Made by a program: the position numbers and the translations under genes
Shown here: positions 4,054-62,508 of the stretch, piece by piece
How the letters are laid out: every line of letters begins with the position of its first letter
How positions within the stretch are numbered: position 1 is the stretch's first letter
Notes under the pieces: model-generated
Database searches by the model: none
The model's input: only the letters and a program-made list of their open reading frames with translations
What the model was told of the DNA's origin: nothing
DNA from: Oculina patagonica
Taxonomy: Eukaryota
Length of the DNA: 64,000 nucleotides
Assembly (NCBI RefSeq): GCF_052425735.1
Contig: NC_135763.1
Coordinates: forward strand, 31,000,001 to 31,064,000
Reading direction: 5' to 3'

Positions 4054-7000
4054 TTAGTCTTTTTCTGTTATGACGTCAAAATTGACATATTCCTTGTCAT
4101 CATACACTTCTAAGTTCACATATGTCTGCAGATCAAAGAAAATAAATAATAAGCCATCCAAACTTTGAACATTTACATCTAAAGACTGAAGGCAATCATT
4201 CCAAGATACAATTACACCGGGAATTACATAACGTTCTGTTTGGCTTAACCTGGGAGCATAGGTAGGGCTTTGAGCAACTTATCTTCTACCGTTCCTTTTT
4301 CCGAAATATAATTAGGAAAGCACTTAAATTCCAGGGAGAAGGTAGTTATTACGCAATTTCTAAATCATTTAATATTTTATACTTTTATGTAACACTGTAA
4401 CATTTTTATCATATTATGATGTAATGTAATGTTTTAAGAGAGTCCTGAGAGGTAGAACGAAATGGTACACGACTTTAAGGCCAATACAAAGCATGAAAAT
4501 TAGGTTAGTTAGTTAGTCCTTCGGGTGTTCTGTGACACACAAGGCCTCACTTGGAAAGTATTCAAAGTCGAACAAACGATACCATACATGTTTTGCATGA
4601 GGCAGACAACAGAAACGTGTTACTCACACATTTTGAATAAACGTCTATGTAGAATTCTTCAAACTAAATGTGAATAGCAAGGTTTACAGACACACAACTT
4701 GGTTCAAAGGGTAACACCTTAAACGAGATACTATTCGTGGGAATTTCTGCAGTGTGTGCTACAATATAAACTGAAACAGACCTGTTTGTCATCCAGAAGT
4801 CTTCTGACCGCAGAGCAAAGCCACTGGAATGTTGGCCTCTTGTGGGGCTGCTCTTCCCAACACTCGGTCATAATGGAATACCTGTAGAAAAACAGTCTTG
4901 TAGTTAAACTTTGTCCTCTTTTTGATTTCGGGAAACGACTGATACAACAACAACAAACAATCAATAAATAGTATCAATAAATAATTAGGCGGGTCCGAAT
5001 GCCTGAAATAACTACAGAGTTAAAAAGGGCGGCAGCCAGTGTTACAATTATTTATGTACAAGTTTAGGTCGGTAAACACACAAACAACACAGAACATTGC
5101 AGCGAGCAAAAAAATAAAATAAAAGACAAATAAGTTAGAATATTGCATTAAATTCAGATGGACGTGGAAACACCACGCTAATGAAGTTTGATTCCAAAAA
5201 GAAGAGAATCGGAACAGAACATAGGCCCTACACAATTCACAATTTACCTTTCTCACGCTTTTTTCGTTAACGGTGACCTGTAATAATCTGTTACTTTAAT
5301 TGTAATTCAAAAGAAGGATGCAAAGTAAAATACTAACAGTTCTTCAGAAATATGTCTTGGTCTAGGCATACGGTATCCTGCCTGCAACAGGTCAGCCACT
5401 TGTCGAGATTTTACTCCAGGATAAGGTGATTCACCTTCAAACGTTAAAACATACGTAAACCTGTGTTATTCTTTATGTCTTAGGTGAATGCTACACTGGT
5501 ATAGTGCTTAACCCGAGGACGTACAAAGGGAGGGGAGAGGGTGTTTGCCATCTCCTCTTGAGGTTTTTCTTCAAAATTTTGAAGAGGATTTATACTACAA
5601 TGCTAGAACTTCCAGTAGCTTTTCATTCATCCCTTGCGGAAAGTTTGATATGTCAACCATGTGTCCATGATAATTACCAGCAGGTCTGACAAAATATCGT
5701 CTTTTTAACATTTTGCTTTATTTTCCAGTTTTTTGTTTAATTTTGCTTTTTAATTTTAACTTTTGTATCAATTTCTTTTTTTCTGACTTTTCAAAAAGGT
5801 AAAATCCAAGTTGGCGTATCCAAAATGACGGCTTTTATGACGCCATGCGACGTCATAGCCAATACAAATTATACTTAACAAAATTGACATCAGATTGCTA
5901 CGCGTCTGTCCTGTTATTGATAAAAAATTGCGTCATAACATTGTCAAATTGTTGGATCTACAACAAACTTTGACAATGTTATGACGAAATTTATAATCAA
6001 AAACAGGACAGACGCATAAAAAACTGATGTCAATTTGCTTTTTACAATAACAAAAAGCCAAATCTGATTTTAAAACGAAGGAAAGAAATGCACGAGGAAG
6101 ACTGATGCGATTGCCGTGCGGCTACAGAATCTTAATTTCGTCGCTGTAATTTGGAGAATCACATTCAAAGGCTCGTAAATTGAAAGTTTGGTAAGAATAC
6201 TGCCAATACTAGAAATACAAGAGAAAATTCGAATTGTTCAACTAACTTTTAATTCAGTGAAAAGTGTTCACAAAATAATCCTCTTAAAGACGGTTCAGCT
6301 TCTTAATTTCTCTGACAGCACAAAGAATTCGCTTAGTTATTGTAAGATAGCTTGTGGAGTAAGCTAAGGGCTCTCTATTAGTCCAGTCAATATAAGCCAT
6401 TTCGTTGTCTAACCCAAAACAAATTGCAACAAAAATAAAACATGCCTTATTCGACTTTGCATATATCGAGGAATAACATACTAAAAGTCACCGTGAATCG
6501 GAGTATTGGAACCTCGTCTTTTTTTGCAATATTTGAACTACAATGAAAGATGACACATTTAATTTATGCATAACTAATGTGATTTTTACAAGTAACATTG
6601 AAGGGTCCTTATCGACAGAAATAATCAAGCTATCAAAACCAAACAACGACAAGCCAACAAATCACTTTATAACAAATGTAGCAGTTATTACTTATCCTAT
6701 TTATTGCGTGAAATGACATTACTATTCTGCCCTTTTTGGTACCTTAGAGAACGTACTACCAGCGGCCGGATTCTGGCATAGATGCAAGTATAGTAACAAC
6801 ATTCGCTAATCGGATATTTCATTAAAAAAGCTGAGTTTTCTTCAAAAATTAAAGATACTGAAAACTGATAAAGTATAATTATACCTTTTTGATCAAAGAA
6901 GAAACGCTGGTCAAAAAAGTTACCGTCTGATAACTAGAATTGCAGCAAACAATTATGGCGGGAGTCTTGGATGAAACCCTTAACATAATCTGTCAGAAAA

Positions 7001-60500: not shown

Positions 60501-62508
60501 ATAAGTGACTTTCACAGAGTACAGAATAGTGCAAGCTCCAGTATTGCGAAATCCTAATATAACATGCTTTCTTTTAACAAGGTTGTTTATTGTTATGGAA
60601 GTTCTCGAATTGATAGGCTGTGTAATTTCGACCACTTTTTCATAAGCCGCTGGGTTATTGAGAGGGTCAGGAAACCGAGACGTTTCTTTAATAAACTGGT
60701 CTGACTGGTTTAGGTACAAATAAAACGTATTATTGCAGTAATATCCTCCATTGTGCGGCAAGCCTGAGCCAGAACAGCTTGTGATGCGGTACTCGACAGT
60801 TATATTGATCCTGTTAGCTTCACTAACCGCGATTTGAGGATTACTTATTAACCAATGGTTTGGTTGTGGATCCGATGATGTTAAGTCATAATCATCACAT
60901 GCTCTATACCGTATACTGGGGATCGTCTCTCTACTCCACTGCAAAAACAAACAAATAATTGATACATTTGTTTAATTAATTAAGCATTTTTGCCAAGACC
61001 ATCACTTAATATCATTCTAAACAATGATGCAATATCCATAAAAAAAAAATAAAGCCAAAAAGAACAACAGACTTAACATACATGAAAGGAAAGTGGAAGC
61101 CGTTGCTTAATGTTTAATGAATCGAAAAATTGCAACTGTACCGCTGGAAAAAAATAATTTAAGTTATTATAATAATATTTTTTATTTTATTTTATCGTAT
61201 TTATCTGTTTTTATCTTTCTTGTTTTAGTGTGTATATATATAAGTCGTATATCTTTATCTTTTTATAAGAGTGACGTAATGTAATGCAGTAAAACGTTTG
61301 TGATGTAGTCAGTAGTGTCAATCGATGTATGTAAGATGTAAAGGACAAGAACAAGAACAAGGACAAGAACACCCCTTACAGGGACCTTCTACAAGCCCTT
61401 GGTCTGCCAACCTTGGCCGAGCAACGAGTATACAAAATTGCTAGCACGATATTTAAAACAATAAACGGTCCTAGCCCTCCCTGCTTGCGTGAGCTGATAC
61501 AACCTAGAAACTCTTCCTACAACTTAAGAGGACAAAATATTCTCAATCTACCTAAAGTGCAAACTACCAAGCACGGACTCAAATCTTGGCGATATTTCGC
61601 CCCCAAATTATGGAATAGCCTCTCAGACACTGCCAGAACTTCAATATGCTATAAAACCTTTAAAAGGGCGTTAAATGCTGTAGATATTAGTCGTCATCTT
61701 TAATTTTTAATTAAATAATTGTATATATTTTATAACTTTTAGCTCATTTTTAATCAGGAAATGCGTCGCACATACTTAAAGCTTTAGAATTGTATTCACT
61801 TTATTTTATTTTTTTATTTTCATTGTGGCTTACCTGTAAACTAGCTGGTGCGTTCCCGCAGATTTTGCTAACCATATCTGCGGGACGCATGGAAACCATA
61901 GCTAAGTGTAATGACCACATTAAACATTGTATTGTATTGTATTGTATTGTATTGTATTGTAAAATGATAATAAAGATATTAAAAATGAAAAATAATAAAT
62001 TTGTTGATTGATTGGTCGATTGATAATACGGTTGTATCTTTGTGTCTTTTTGGCCAATAAAGGACACGAAGGCAAAAATTATACTCACTGTTTATAGTTA
62101 ACAGCAAACTGTTTCCTTTTGTCCAAAGTGTTTTAAAAAAGGTACTAAGCGGAAACAGTTCGAGAGTGGTCCATCGTAGTGGTTTCCAAAAGTCCTACCG
62201 CTCAGGGGACCGTTTTAGAATTAATGATCCTTTTCTCCCTCGACCAGTTTGGTACAAATGGCTTTATACGCGTCCATTTTGTCAGCTGTTACGTTCAGAA
62301 TTAAGAAGGGGCAAAATGAACCGAAGGAGGTTTGCTTCGCAAGCTAGCAAGTATGTCACCATGCTTGGTAACCTTTACTTACCCCGCTTTTCACTTCCCA
62401 GTGCCATTTGCTCGGATTAGCTGCTGTGTTCACTAGTGTCACTTGTCTTGATGACACACAAGCTACAAACGTCAAGACAGTTAAGACAGCGACCCACAAA
62501 TATTCCAT
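48537..62508 (-). CDS. Receptor tyrosine kinase gene 3: Eph-like ectodomain with 2 FN3 domains, TM, RET/FGFR/Cad96Ca-like kinase (~879 aa)
   Basis: Exons 62383-62508 ([28 protein letters not shown]...), 60266-60938, 59149-59196, 57911-58273 (FN3-1), 57076-57281 and 56338-56401 (FN3-2; the 56338 donor GTTTGA is weak), 55751-55859 (TM), 53075-53148, 52654-52830, 52360-52470, 51620-51807, 51362-51481, 50924-50994, 50410-50450, 49657-49753, 49273-49372, 48537-48608. Sum 2640 nt. Confidence 0.88.
51078..51335. repeat. (GACA)n and (GGAT/GAAT)n microsatellites in a gene 3 kinase intron
   Basis: Read directly from the sequence. Confidence 0.85.
53160..54476 (-). mobile_element. Second, near-identical HINE copy, inserted in the acceptor pyrimidine tract of gene 3 exon 53075-53148
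   Basis: Reverse complement of 17892-19207; the spurious ORFs in the two copies translate almost identically. Same subTIRs and 3' hairpin. Confidence 0.85.
57525..57770. mobile_element. MITE
   Basis: taagcccgggccaaacgaggatgagagttga / tcaacacttctcctaatttggcccaggcttta. Confidence 0.6.
57800..57897. mobile_element. 98-bp palindromic MITE, ~13 nt into the intron after the FN3-1 exon of gene 3
   Basis: caatctcgttcccagagtccacgttccc ... gggaacgtggactctgggaacgagattg. Confidence 0.75.
59791..60032. mobile_element. MITE with internal GATCCC repeats
   Basis: acatac|cagggtcgtaacctggtata ... tatacctggttacaaccctg|acatac. Confidence 0.7.
60266..60938 (-). CDS. Gene 3 exon: Eph-receptor-like ligand-binding domain + sushi
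   Basis: Paralogous exon (673 nt) within ORF 60255-60950, with conserved Eph-type cysteines. Confidence 0.85.
61370..61960 (+). mobile_element. 3' fragment of a LINE with (ATTGT)n tail
   Basis: ORF 61413-61703 ([35 protein letters not shown]) resembles non-LTR RT C-termini; ATTAAA + (attgt)n at ~61919-61960. Confidence 0.75.

Follow-up and report, generated by a model that had tools for sequence, protein, structure and literature searches.

Are the receptor tyrosine kinases (RTKs) encoded in a 64-kb stretch of Oculina patagonica DNA (contig NC_135763.1, positions 31,000,001 to 31,064,000; hereafter 'the window', analysed over its full length) Eph receptors, as their extracellular half suggests, or is their intracellular half of another origin? 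The answer that we favour, with a probability of about 0.85, is that the window holds three expressed or expressible members of an RTK family in which an Eph ectodomain is set on a transmembrane (TM), kinase and tail module of the type found in cnidarian receptor kinases with immunoglobulin (Ig) and fibronectin type III (FN3) domains, and that this ancient fusion was followed by exchange of ectodomains. In the literature, cnidarian kinases that bear an Eph ligand-binding domain (LBD) are treated as ordinary Ephs, and a missing SAM domain is put down to truncated gene models (PMC6485061, PMC6993872).

Three paralogous genes are arranged in tandem in the window, all on the minus strand:

48537..62508, minus strand: gene g3, 17 exons, 879 residues; a GT-AG model with an open frame free of stops, complete in the sequenced DNA
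31482..43171, minus strand: gene g2, deposited protein P0172 (ACROYT_G023290), 806 residues
4054..19626, minus strand: gene g1, deposited protein P0174 (ACROYT_G023288), 806 residues

An earlier note on this DNA had placed the array at 4054-62508 and described three intact Eph-style genes. Both limits are exact, the g1 stop ending at 4054 and the g3 ATG lying at 62508, and all three genes have an Eph-type N-terminus, but 'intact' holds for g3 only, which is the one copy without assembly gaps. Exons were located by comparing the DNA of the paralogues with one another, and a splice-site search then gave the g3 model; the models of g1 and g2 (an N-terminal part of 410 residues and a C-terminal part of 385) are 100% identical to P0174 and P0172. 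The kinase motifs claimed in that note, of the RLPVKWM type and with an insert, are present in all three copies (at about 52.4-50.9 kb, 35.3-33.9 kb and 11.5-10.1 kb). In order, the g3 product comprises a signal peptide, the LBD, a Cys-rich domain, a Cys segment from a 48-nt exon, a first FN3 domain (FN3-1), a second (FN3-2) encoded by two exons, the TM segment, a juxtamembrane region, a kinase spread over eight exons, and a 23-residue tail:

62383..62508, minus strand: g3 exon 1, signal peptide and start of the LBD; ATG at 62508, donor GGG|GTAAGT
60266..60938, minus strand: g3 exon 2 (673 nt), Eph LBD and Cys-rich (sushi) domain; Pfam Ephrin_lbd 52.9 bits, Ephrin_CRD 36.1 bits
59149..59196, minus strand: g3 exon 3 (48 nt), Cys (EGF-like), phase 1-1; a 48-nt exon stands at the equivalent place in the canonical Eph P0282
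57911..58273, minus strand: g3 exon 4, FN3-1; Pfam fn3
57076..57281, minus strand: g3 exon 5, first part of FN3-2, ending ...TYEFQV; an RNA contig with a loose end at 56403 reads into it
56338..56401, minus strand: g3 exon 6, second part of FN3-2 and last Eph-like exon; RNA joint 55859|56338 in 3 runs
55751..55859, minus strand: g3 exon 7, TM exon, first of the non-Eph module; RNA joints on both sides
53075..53148, minus strand: g3 exon 8, juxtamembrane; RNA joints 53148|55751 and 52830|53075
52654..52830, minus strand: g3 exon 9, kinase N-lobe (GAGNFGQV ... VAVKTLK); intron phase as in the Ig-type RTK P0208
52360..52470, minus strand: g3 exon 10, kinase, helix C
51620..51807, minus strand: g3 exon 11, hinge, helix D, long D-E insert and helix E; RNA joint 51481|51620
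51362..51481, minus strand: g3 exon 12, activation loop
50924..50994, minus strand: g3 exon 13, kinase; RNA joint 50450|50924
50410..50450, minus strand: g3 exon 14 (41 nt), with an equivalent micro-exon in P0208 and P0166
49657..49753, minus strand: g3 exon 15, kinase C-lobe; an RNA loose end reads FTIG|ESPYPGV
49273..49372, minus strand: g3 exon 16, end of the kinase (…RRLLDDKQ); donor CAG|GTCTGT
48537..48608, minus strand: g3 exon 17, 23-residue tail and stop; two YxN motifs

The 5′ module of these genes is Eph by sequence and by exon structure. Their large upstream exons match Pfam Ephrin_lbd at 53-62 bits (cut-off 27) and also Ephrin_CRD, and the exon that follows matches fn3; the Ephrin_CRD match and the 48-nt Cys exon are found in 3/3 genes. 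Whole-protein Pfam runs were made on the products of g1 and g2, and g3 was scanned exon by exon and with local scripts. P0172/P0174 returned Ephrin_lbd at 64/55 bits, Ephrin_CRD, one fn3 and PK_Tyr at 310 bits, and no Ig domain, and the canonical Oculina paralogue P0270 returned Ephrin_lbd at 55.5 bits, two fn3, EphA2_TM, PK_Tyr and SAM_1/SAM_2. The LBD profile score of the window genes is thus on a par with that of a canonical receptor, and the reading of the N-terminal exon as an Eph LBD is borne out. There are two FN3 domains in g3, and one in g1 and g2 together with micro-exons for Thr/Pro/Ser, N gaps lying at the FN3-2 position. The ectodomain exon plan of g3 is also that of the canonical coral Eph P0282 (Porites lobata): exon 1 ends in phase 0, a single large exon for the LBD and Cys-rich domain ends in phase 1, and after it come the 48-nt Cys exon, the FN3-1 exon, an FN3-2 split after TY(E/Q)FQV and ending in phase 1, and then the TM exon.

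At the TM exon the sequence likeness to canonical Ephs stops. A maximum-likelihood tree of kinase domains (61 rows, among them vertebrate Ephs, two SAM-bearing cnidarian Eph groups, the chimera family and cnidarian RTKs) recovers the Eph kinases as one clade (support 100/99) and the chimera family, with g1-g3, as another (99/98). The chimeras group with cnidarian FGFR-, Tie-, Ret-, Cad96Ca-, VEGFR- and PDGFR-like receptor kinases at 100/96, to the exclusion of Ephs and cytoplasmic tyrosine kinases, and form their own clade beside, not inside, the sampled clade of Ig-type RTKs. A topology that joins chimeric and Eph kinases in a single clade is rejected by the approximately unbiased (AU) test (p=0.002). 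The g3 kinase is 50-53% identical to the kinases of Ig-type RTKs and 35-39% to those of Ephs, the latter no greater than its identity to cytoplasmic tyrosine kinases. Searches of PDB rank the same way: the cytoplasmic part of g1 best matches FGFR1 (275 bits), RET (274) and FGFR2/3 (about 266-268), with no Eph in the top 60, and its Montipora orthologue matches RET (266 bits), then Tie2 (251) and FGFR, the corresponding score of the Eph-kinase relative P0066 being 389 bits to EphB1.

The segment between helices D and E leads to the same placement. From GDL to HRD it spans 50-52 residues in 18/18 measured family members (50 in g3) and 50-51 in other cnidarian RTKs, but 36 in 21/21 measured Eph kinases, so that the chimeras carry a 14-15-residue D-E insert that every measured Eph kinase lacks; Yeung et al. 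(2021, PMC8662651) report that Eph and EGFR lack this long insert. Gene structure agrees. Comparison with loci of Exaiptasia and P. lobata shows that 8/8 compared kinase-region introns of g3 coincide, in position and phase, with those of the P. lobata Ig/FN3 receptor kinase P0208 (locus L002), the agreement extending to the 41-nt WSYG...G exon and to a separate last exon beginning TYVNL. The canonical Ephs P0303 (Exaiptasia) and P0282 have other introns (in the glycine loop, after ...FLK and after ...IHR) and no such micro-exon. The window kinases read RLPVKWM where Ephs have KIPIRWTAPE; they keep the catalytic motifs, including VAVK and the helix-C Glu, and have a single activation-loop Tyr. 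No canonical Eph kinase exon was found in the six frames of the window, the only matches being cross-matches on the HRDLAARN exon. A kinase of Eph lineage would show a short D-E segment and GGKIPIRWTAPE; tree, AU test, D-E spacing, PDB ranking and introns all place these kinases elsewhere. On these grounds the kinase of g1-g3 is not an Eph kinase, as had been proposed from its motifs.

The flanks of the kinase tell the same. P0172 and P0174 give no EphA2_TM match in Pfam, in contrast to P0270, and the juxtamembrane YxDPxxYEDP motif of Ephs is absent from the chimera; P0066 and P0270 have YIDPGNY. Downstream, the kinase is followed by 23 residues from a last exon of their own, ending ...VITEKD with no PDZ-binding end, and the earlier note had put the stop at this distance. 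That note had also claimed the absence of a SAM domain, and none was found in any frame of the 64 kb, by tblastn with 18 Eph C-termini or by a SAM profile (best profile E=0.6; the tblastn matches at E=0.007 are to the kinase end contained in the queries), nor in P0172 and P0174 by Pfam. On these scans we reject a hidden SAM exon in the window. The short tail is itself informative: it is homologous to the tail exon of the Ig-type RTKs, the Montipora homologue P0009 carries a matching YVNL tail, and the two YxN motifs are conserved from stony corals to Exaiptasia and Actinia. In phosphorylated form, pYxN is the consensus for Grb2-type SH2 domains.

That the two halves form one transcript was a point the note had set for checking, and it holds at the junction that matters. 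Over 50415-56410, a part of g3 that is only 73-87% like g1 and g2, the model was compared with RNA-derived contigs of four public runs. Runs X1-X3 contain joints with GT..AG on the minus strand at 56338|55859 (second FN3-2 exon to TM), 55751|53148 (TM to juxtamembrane) and 53075|52830 (juxtamembrane to first kinase exon), and the joints 51620|51481 and 50924|50450 occur in X1-X3 and in X5, which has these two only. Five introns of g3 are thereby confirmed, and one contig of 280 nt spans the second FN3-2 exon, the TM and juxtamembrane exons and the first kinase exon. Loose contig ends read on upstream into the first FN3-2 exon and downstream into the ESPYPGV exon.

How old is the join, and where does it lie? 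The same architecture occurs in Montipora, Acropora, Porites, Oculina, Stylophora, Pocillopora, Exaiptasia, Actinia and Nematostella, and the module order with compatible phases recurs in the three window copies and in >15 species. In a non-exhaustive test, all database matches above 56% kinase identity came from stony corals or sea anemones. Within the family the kinase tree sets anemones, complex corals and robust corals apart, in keeping with their species groups, and the fusion is therefore older than the split of stony corals and sea anemones. Read as a local event with later amplification, the earlier proposal does not hold; the exon shuffling that it invoked is backed by intron positions and phases, which put the join in, or close to, the phase-1 intron that precedes the TM exon and mark it as a case of classical 1-1 exon shuffling. 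Publicly, members go under such names as 'ephrin type-A receptor 7-like', 'angiopoietin-1 receptor-like' and 'Ret-like', and the earlier prediction of one-sided automatic labels is correct. We found no paper, among open-access articles and preprints, that describes the family as hybrid, and a foreign kinase is unmentioned in Arcas et al. 2020 (PMC6993872), Mellott and Burke 2008 (PMC2405795) and a 2022 review (PMC10084454). The family is an RTK made by exon shuffling and hidden in public annotation under Eph names; its spread over stony corals and sea anemones, and the clustering of its ectodomains by lineage with canonical Ephs, are new.

Outside the family stands P0263, a partial model from Pocillopora meandrina in which Ephrin_lbd, CRD and Ephrin_rec_like domains are joined to a kinase that nests within the clade of the other cnidarian RTKs, where its neighbour is a Pocillopora protein named 'Ret-like' (100/97). 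A second, independent fusion of an LBD to a non-Eph kinase would explain it, as would a gene-model artefact.

The ectodomains have a different history from the kinases. In a tree of 41 rows they cluster by lineage, with hybrid and canonical receptors mixed: Actinia P0185 pairs with P0300 and Exaiptasia P0184 with P0303 (both 100/100), g1 and g2 join P0270 at 100/98, and the ectodomains of Montipora, Acropora and Oculina are likewise clustered by lineage. Monophyly of the hybrid ectodomains is rejected (ΔlnL 2418, AU p=7e-5). Sliding identity between hybrid and canonical receptors of one species stays mostly at 60-100% along the ectodomain and, in 7/8 species pairs, drops at the TM exon to 10-40%; in the pair from Porites lutea the ectodomain identity is lower (about 35-60%), without a sharp step. 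Chimeric and canonical genes share a contig in Oculina, Montipora, Acropora and Porites. On the P. lobata contig CALNXK010000020.1 (loci L003 and L004), a tandem pair of canonical SAM-bearing Ephs lies ~220 kb from a tandem hybrid pair on the opposite strand, and an Eph 'supercluster' seems to be conserved between coral families.

Exchange has left traces inside the array as well. The gene g2 is a mosaic with a breakpoint at about 34700-34200, in the kinase module: 5′ of it, g2 is 90-99% like g1, and from ~34.7 kb down to at least 29.2 kb, intergenic DNA included, it is 93-99% like g3 and 79-85% like g1, suggesting that an unequal crossover took place or that a long tract was converted. In the LBD exon (42200-41700 against 17330-16830), g1 and g2 differ with a synonymous divergence (dS) of 0.28 and a DNA identity of 85%, next to an adjoining intron that is 99.3% identical and an FN3-1 exon with a dS of 0.027; this looks like a conversion patch from another paralogue. 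Positive selection on the LBD between g1 and g2 was considered and rejected, as the ratio of nonsynonymous to synonymous divergence (dN/dS) is 0.41 and dS itself is raised (0.28). The cytoplasmic part of the two genes is under constraint (dN/dS 0.12). Taken together, these patterns suggest concerted evolution limited to one module, by gene conversion or unequal crossover between neighbouring genes and ending where the sequences cease to be homologous, as the simplest reading, and point to an exchange of ectodomains with canonical Ephs that occurred many times and that the earlier note had not foreseen.

Several points weigh against our explanation or narrow it. The phases of the TM and first juxtamembrane exons of g3 (1 to 2, then 2 to 1) match those of a canonical coral Eph and the plan of P0208 differs, so that the true breakpoint may be found 3′ of the proposed one, by one or two introns. 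The non-Eph RTKs in the kinase tree are cnidarian, none being a bilaterian RET, FGFR, Tie, Torso or Cad96Ca, and the label 'FGFR/RET-like' rests on PDB bit scores and on the automatic names of cnidarian proteins; by those bit scores FGFR1 and RET are about equal and both exceed Tie2, so that FGFR and RET are not separable. Between FN3-1 and TM in g1 and g2, where FN3-2 would lie, the DNA is unread, and the g3 tail exon (48537-48608) falls outside the stretch covered by RNA. The ligand and a Grb2/MAPK output are suggested by motifs. Gene conversion is described as rare in the tandem arrays of corals (Noel et al., 2023, PMC10236652), and the clustering of ectodomains by lineage could have come about through repeated new fusions instead.

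The last of these points amounts to an explanation of its own, in which, lineage by lineage, the 5′ half of a canonical Eph was joined anew, by unequal crossover, to an existing non-Eph 3′ half. Such a history would account for ectodomains that cluster with the canonical Ephs of their lineage and for a drop in identity at the same exon boundary in 7/8 species pairs, and g2 attests to unequal crossover or large conversion tracts within the array. Each 3′ partner, on the other hand, must have belonged to the monophyletic clade of chimeric kinases (99/98), so that this account, too, needs an initial fusion before corals and anemones split, which makes it a variant of ours; moreover, the patchy dS within one set of exons fits short conversion tracts better than replacement of a whole module. 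We regard it as unlikely, although it is the strongest of the competitors.

Far less probable is a reading, implicit in Krishnan et al. 2019 (PMC6485061), on which the genes encode Ephs proper, with a rapidly diverged kinase and a lost SAM domain. Those authors had the cnidarian Eph kinases in three clades and recovered two anthozoan-specific 'Eph kinase' clades, against one LBD clade, and ascribed the mismatch to domain-specific selection, with the missing SAM possibly due to truncated models; their kinase tree held only Eph-type sequences and non-metazoan outgroups. Domain-specific selection and truncated models, as they proposed, would be in keeping with this reading, as are the database names of the ephrin receptor type and the Eph-like phases of the TM and juxtamembrane exons. 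It is contradicted by the kinase tree and the AU test, by a discrete D-E insert of 14-15 residues held in common with non-Eph RTKs, by 8/8 introns and a terminal YxN exon that agree with an Ig/FN3 RTK and set the genes apart from those of Ephs, and by an identity to Eph kinases (35-39%) no higher than that to cytoplasmic tyrosine kinases. We accordingly reject a divergent Eph kinase on the tree, the AU test, the D-E insert and the introns.

Least credible is an artefact in which an Eph ectodomain gene or pseudogene is read through into a neighbouring RTK that has its own transcript: automatic predictions in tandem arrays do often fuse neighbours, and some related database models are partial or odd (P0166 at exon 5, P0263), but the spliced RNA contigs of g3, which in three runs join the second FN3-2, TM, juxtamembrane and first kinase exons at the predicted GT-AG sites, lead us to reject it, the order and phases repeat in three copies and >15 species, and no other ectodomain or Eph kinase exon lies between the modules.

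Under the explanation that we prefer, an ancient fusion with later ectodomain exchange, exons 1-6 encode a genuine Eph ectodomain with one or two FN3 domains, and everything from the TM exon onward (TM, juxtamembrane region, kinase and tail) is the module seen in the Ig/FN3 receptor kinases of cnidarians. The two would have been brought together before the split of stony corals and sea anemones, by 1-1 exon shuffling at a phase-1 intron. Thereafter the kinase module would have evolved vertically, and the ectodomain module would time and again have been replaced by the ectodomain exons of linked canonical Ephs with a SAM domain, or traded with them, through gene conversion or unequal crossover, an exchange of the kind that appears within the window array itself. 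We infer that the receptor sees membrane-bound ephrins shared with the canonical Ephs of its species, ephrins being the likeliest ligands because the ectodomain has been kept like that of canonical Ephs. Signalling would then run from trans-phosphorylation of the kinase through the recruitment of Grb2-type SH2 adaptors to the YxN tail and on to a Ras/MAPK output, replacing the Eph route by way of juxtamembrane region, SAM domain and PDZ-binding end.

It is possible, though doubtful, that selection keeps hybrid and canonical ectodomains alike within each species, such that both read the same ephrin code and probably co-cluster, one contact cue thus feeding two outputs: an Eph-type output through juxtamembrane region and SAM, and a growth-factor-type output through Grb2 and Ras/MAPK. 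Were this so, the family would be a very old natural experiment in chimeric receptors, in which Eph-style clustering can activate a kinase of FGFR/RET type, and contact-dependent ephrin signalling would be wired to growth control in corals and anemones.

For the Eph literature, the consequence is that one 'anthozoan Eph kinase clade' is not an Eph kinase, its whole cytoplasmic module coming from an FGFR/Tie/Ret-like lineage. This changes how Eph repertoires are counted and named in corals and anemones, explains the published mismatch between LBD and kinase trees, and goes against the view of Eph architecture as invariant across animals. The fusion is old, conserved, constrained and transcribed. 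The locus would also be a clear case of module-limited concerted evolution, and an exception, where gene conversion was reported as rare (PMC10236652). Finally, the family is a test case, provided by nature, of whether an ectodomain that binds ephrins can drive a kinase of growth-factor type, and its members in Nematostella and Exaiptasia make that question testable in laboratory models.

The two gapped genes are built as follows:

43171-43025, 42307-41629, 40941-40894, 40680-40324, minus strand: g2 exons upstream of the N gaps
37863-37834 (30-nt micro-exon), 37140-37035 (TM), 36830-36757, 35819-35640, 35288-35178, minus strand: g2 exons after the N gaps
34663-34476, 34337-34218, 33956-33886, 33409-33369, 32701-32605, 32320-32221, 31553-31482, minus strand: remaining g2 exons
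19626-19480, 17433-16755, 16075-16028, 15714-15358, minus strand: g1 exons upstream of the N gap
13969-13940 (30-nt micro-exon), 13284-13179 (TM), 12968-12895, 12079-11900, 11548-11438, minus strand: g1 exons after the N gap
10872-10685, 10540-10421, 10194-10124, 9653-9613, 5434-5338, 4881-4782, 4125-4054, minus strand: remaining g1 exons

The N gaps (14117-14827 in g1, 37949-39690 in g2) fall between the FN3-1 exon and the TM exon, and the frame is kept across them because phase 1 is found both at the end of the FN3-1 exon and at the start of the TM exon. The deposited 806-residue proteins span the gap with a 30-nt micro-exon (13969-13940 in g1, 37863-37834 in g2). A candidate micro-exon of 15 nt with good splice sites (15010-14996 in g1, 39985-39971 in g2) is not used in them; together the 15-nt and 30-nt micro-exons, phase 1-1, would give a Thr/Pro/Ser-rich stalk where g3 has its second FN3. 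No FN3-2-like exon was found in the sequenced flanks of the gaps. The micro-exons flank the gaps, and further copies of them, or an FN3-2 exon, may lie inside. A (TACC)n microsatellite of ~21 copies (14837-14921) adjoins the g1 gap and may have caused the break in the assembly.

Mobile DNA is scattered through the array. An element of 1,326 bp at 53155-54480 on the plus strand, in an intron of g3, has short terminal inverted repeats (GAGTCTAATGC ... GCATTAGACTC), and a 99.4% identical copy lies at 17888-19212 in the opposite orientation in intron 1 of g1, which for that reason is 2,046 nt long, compared with 717 nt in g2. The element is covered by RNA contigs to a depth of 300-1000, far above that of the exons, and contigs exit both of its ends into differing sequences; it is therefore a multi-copy transcribed repeat. 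It has no match in Rfam and looks like a recently active non-autonomous DNA transposon. In the 12-kb spacer between g2 and g1, open reading frames (ORFs) at 20276-20773 (plus strand), 24863-26005, 26837-27250 and 27282-27980 (all minus strand) carry DUF3504 and phage-integrase (tyrosine recombinase) domains and QRICH1-like domains, in two similar copies. They look like the remains of Crypton-type transposons, a possible substrate for misalignment of the array. Downstream of g1, an ORF of 343 residues at 191-1222 (plus strand) with a partial RVT_1 domain is probably a fragment of a retroelement. The g1 intron after the 41-nt exon (9612-5435) is 4.2 kb long against ~0.66 kb in g2 and g3, an insertion of ~3.5 kb.

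Among known systems, the hybrid is like the canonical Ephs (vertebrate EphA/EphB; P0270, P0282, P0303) in ectodomain domains, exon plan and genomic linkage, with a same-species ectodomain identity of 60-100% in 7/8 pairs, but it lacks the EphA2_TM-type region, YxDPxxY, SAM and PDZ-binding end and has a kinase of another lineage with other introns. With the cnidarian Ig/FN3 RTKs (P0208 of P. lobata, P0219 of Oculina) it has in common a kinase that is 50-53% identical, the same D-E insert, 8/8 introns and a separate last exon, TY(V/I)NL...Y.N, with two YxN motifs; these receptors differ in their own ectodomains, which consist of Ig and FN3 domains (or SEA or lectin domains) without an Eph LBD, and in their TM/juxtamembrane plan. 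The best PDB sequence matches of its kinase are vertebrate FGFR1-3, RET and Tie2, which belong to a group called long-D-E receptor kinases or FPVR (Yeung et al., 2021, PMC8662651). The chimera differs from these in having no cadherin, Ig or EGF/Tie ectodomain. Tandem arrays are known to yield hybrid genes by unequal crossover, of the haemoglobin Lepore/anti-Lepore type. With its g1-like 5′ two thirds and its g3-like downstream part, intergenic DNA included, g2 is like them; it differs in that its exchange was between paralogues of the same architecture, and the founding join of Eph and non-Eph halves is an ancient one, made at an intron where two modules without homology meet.

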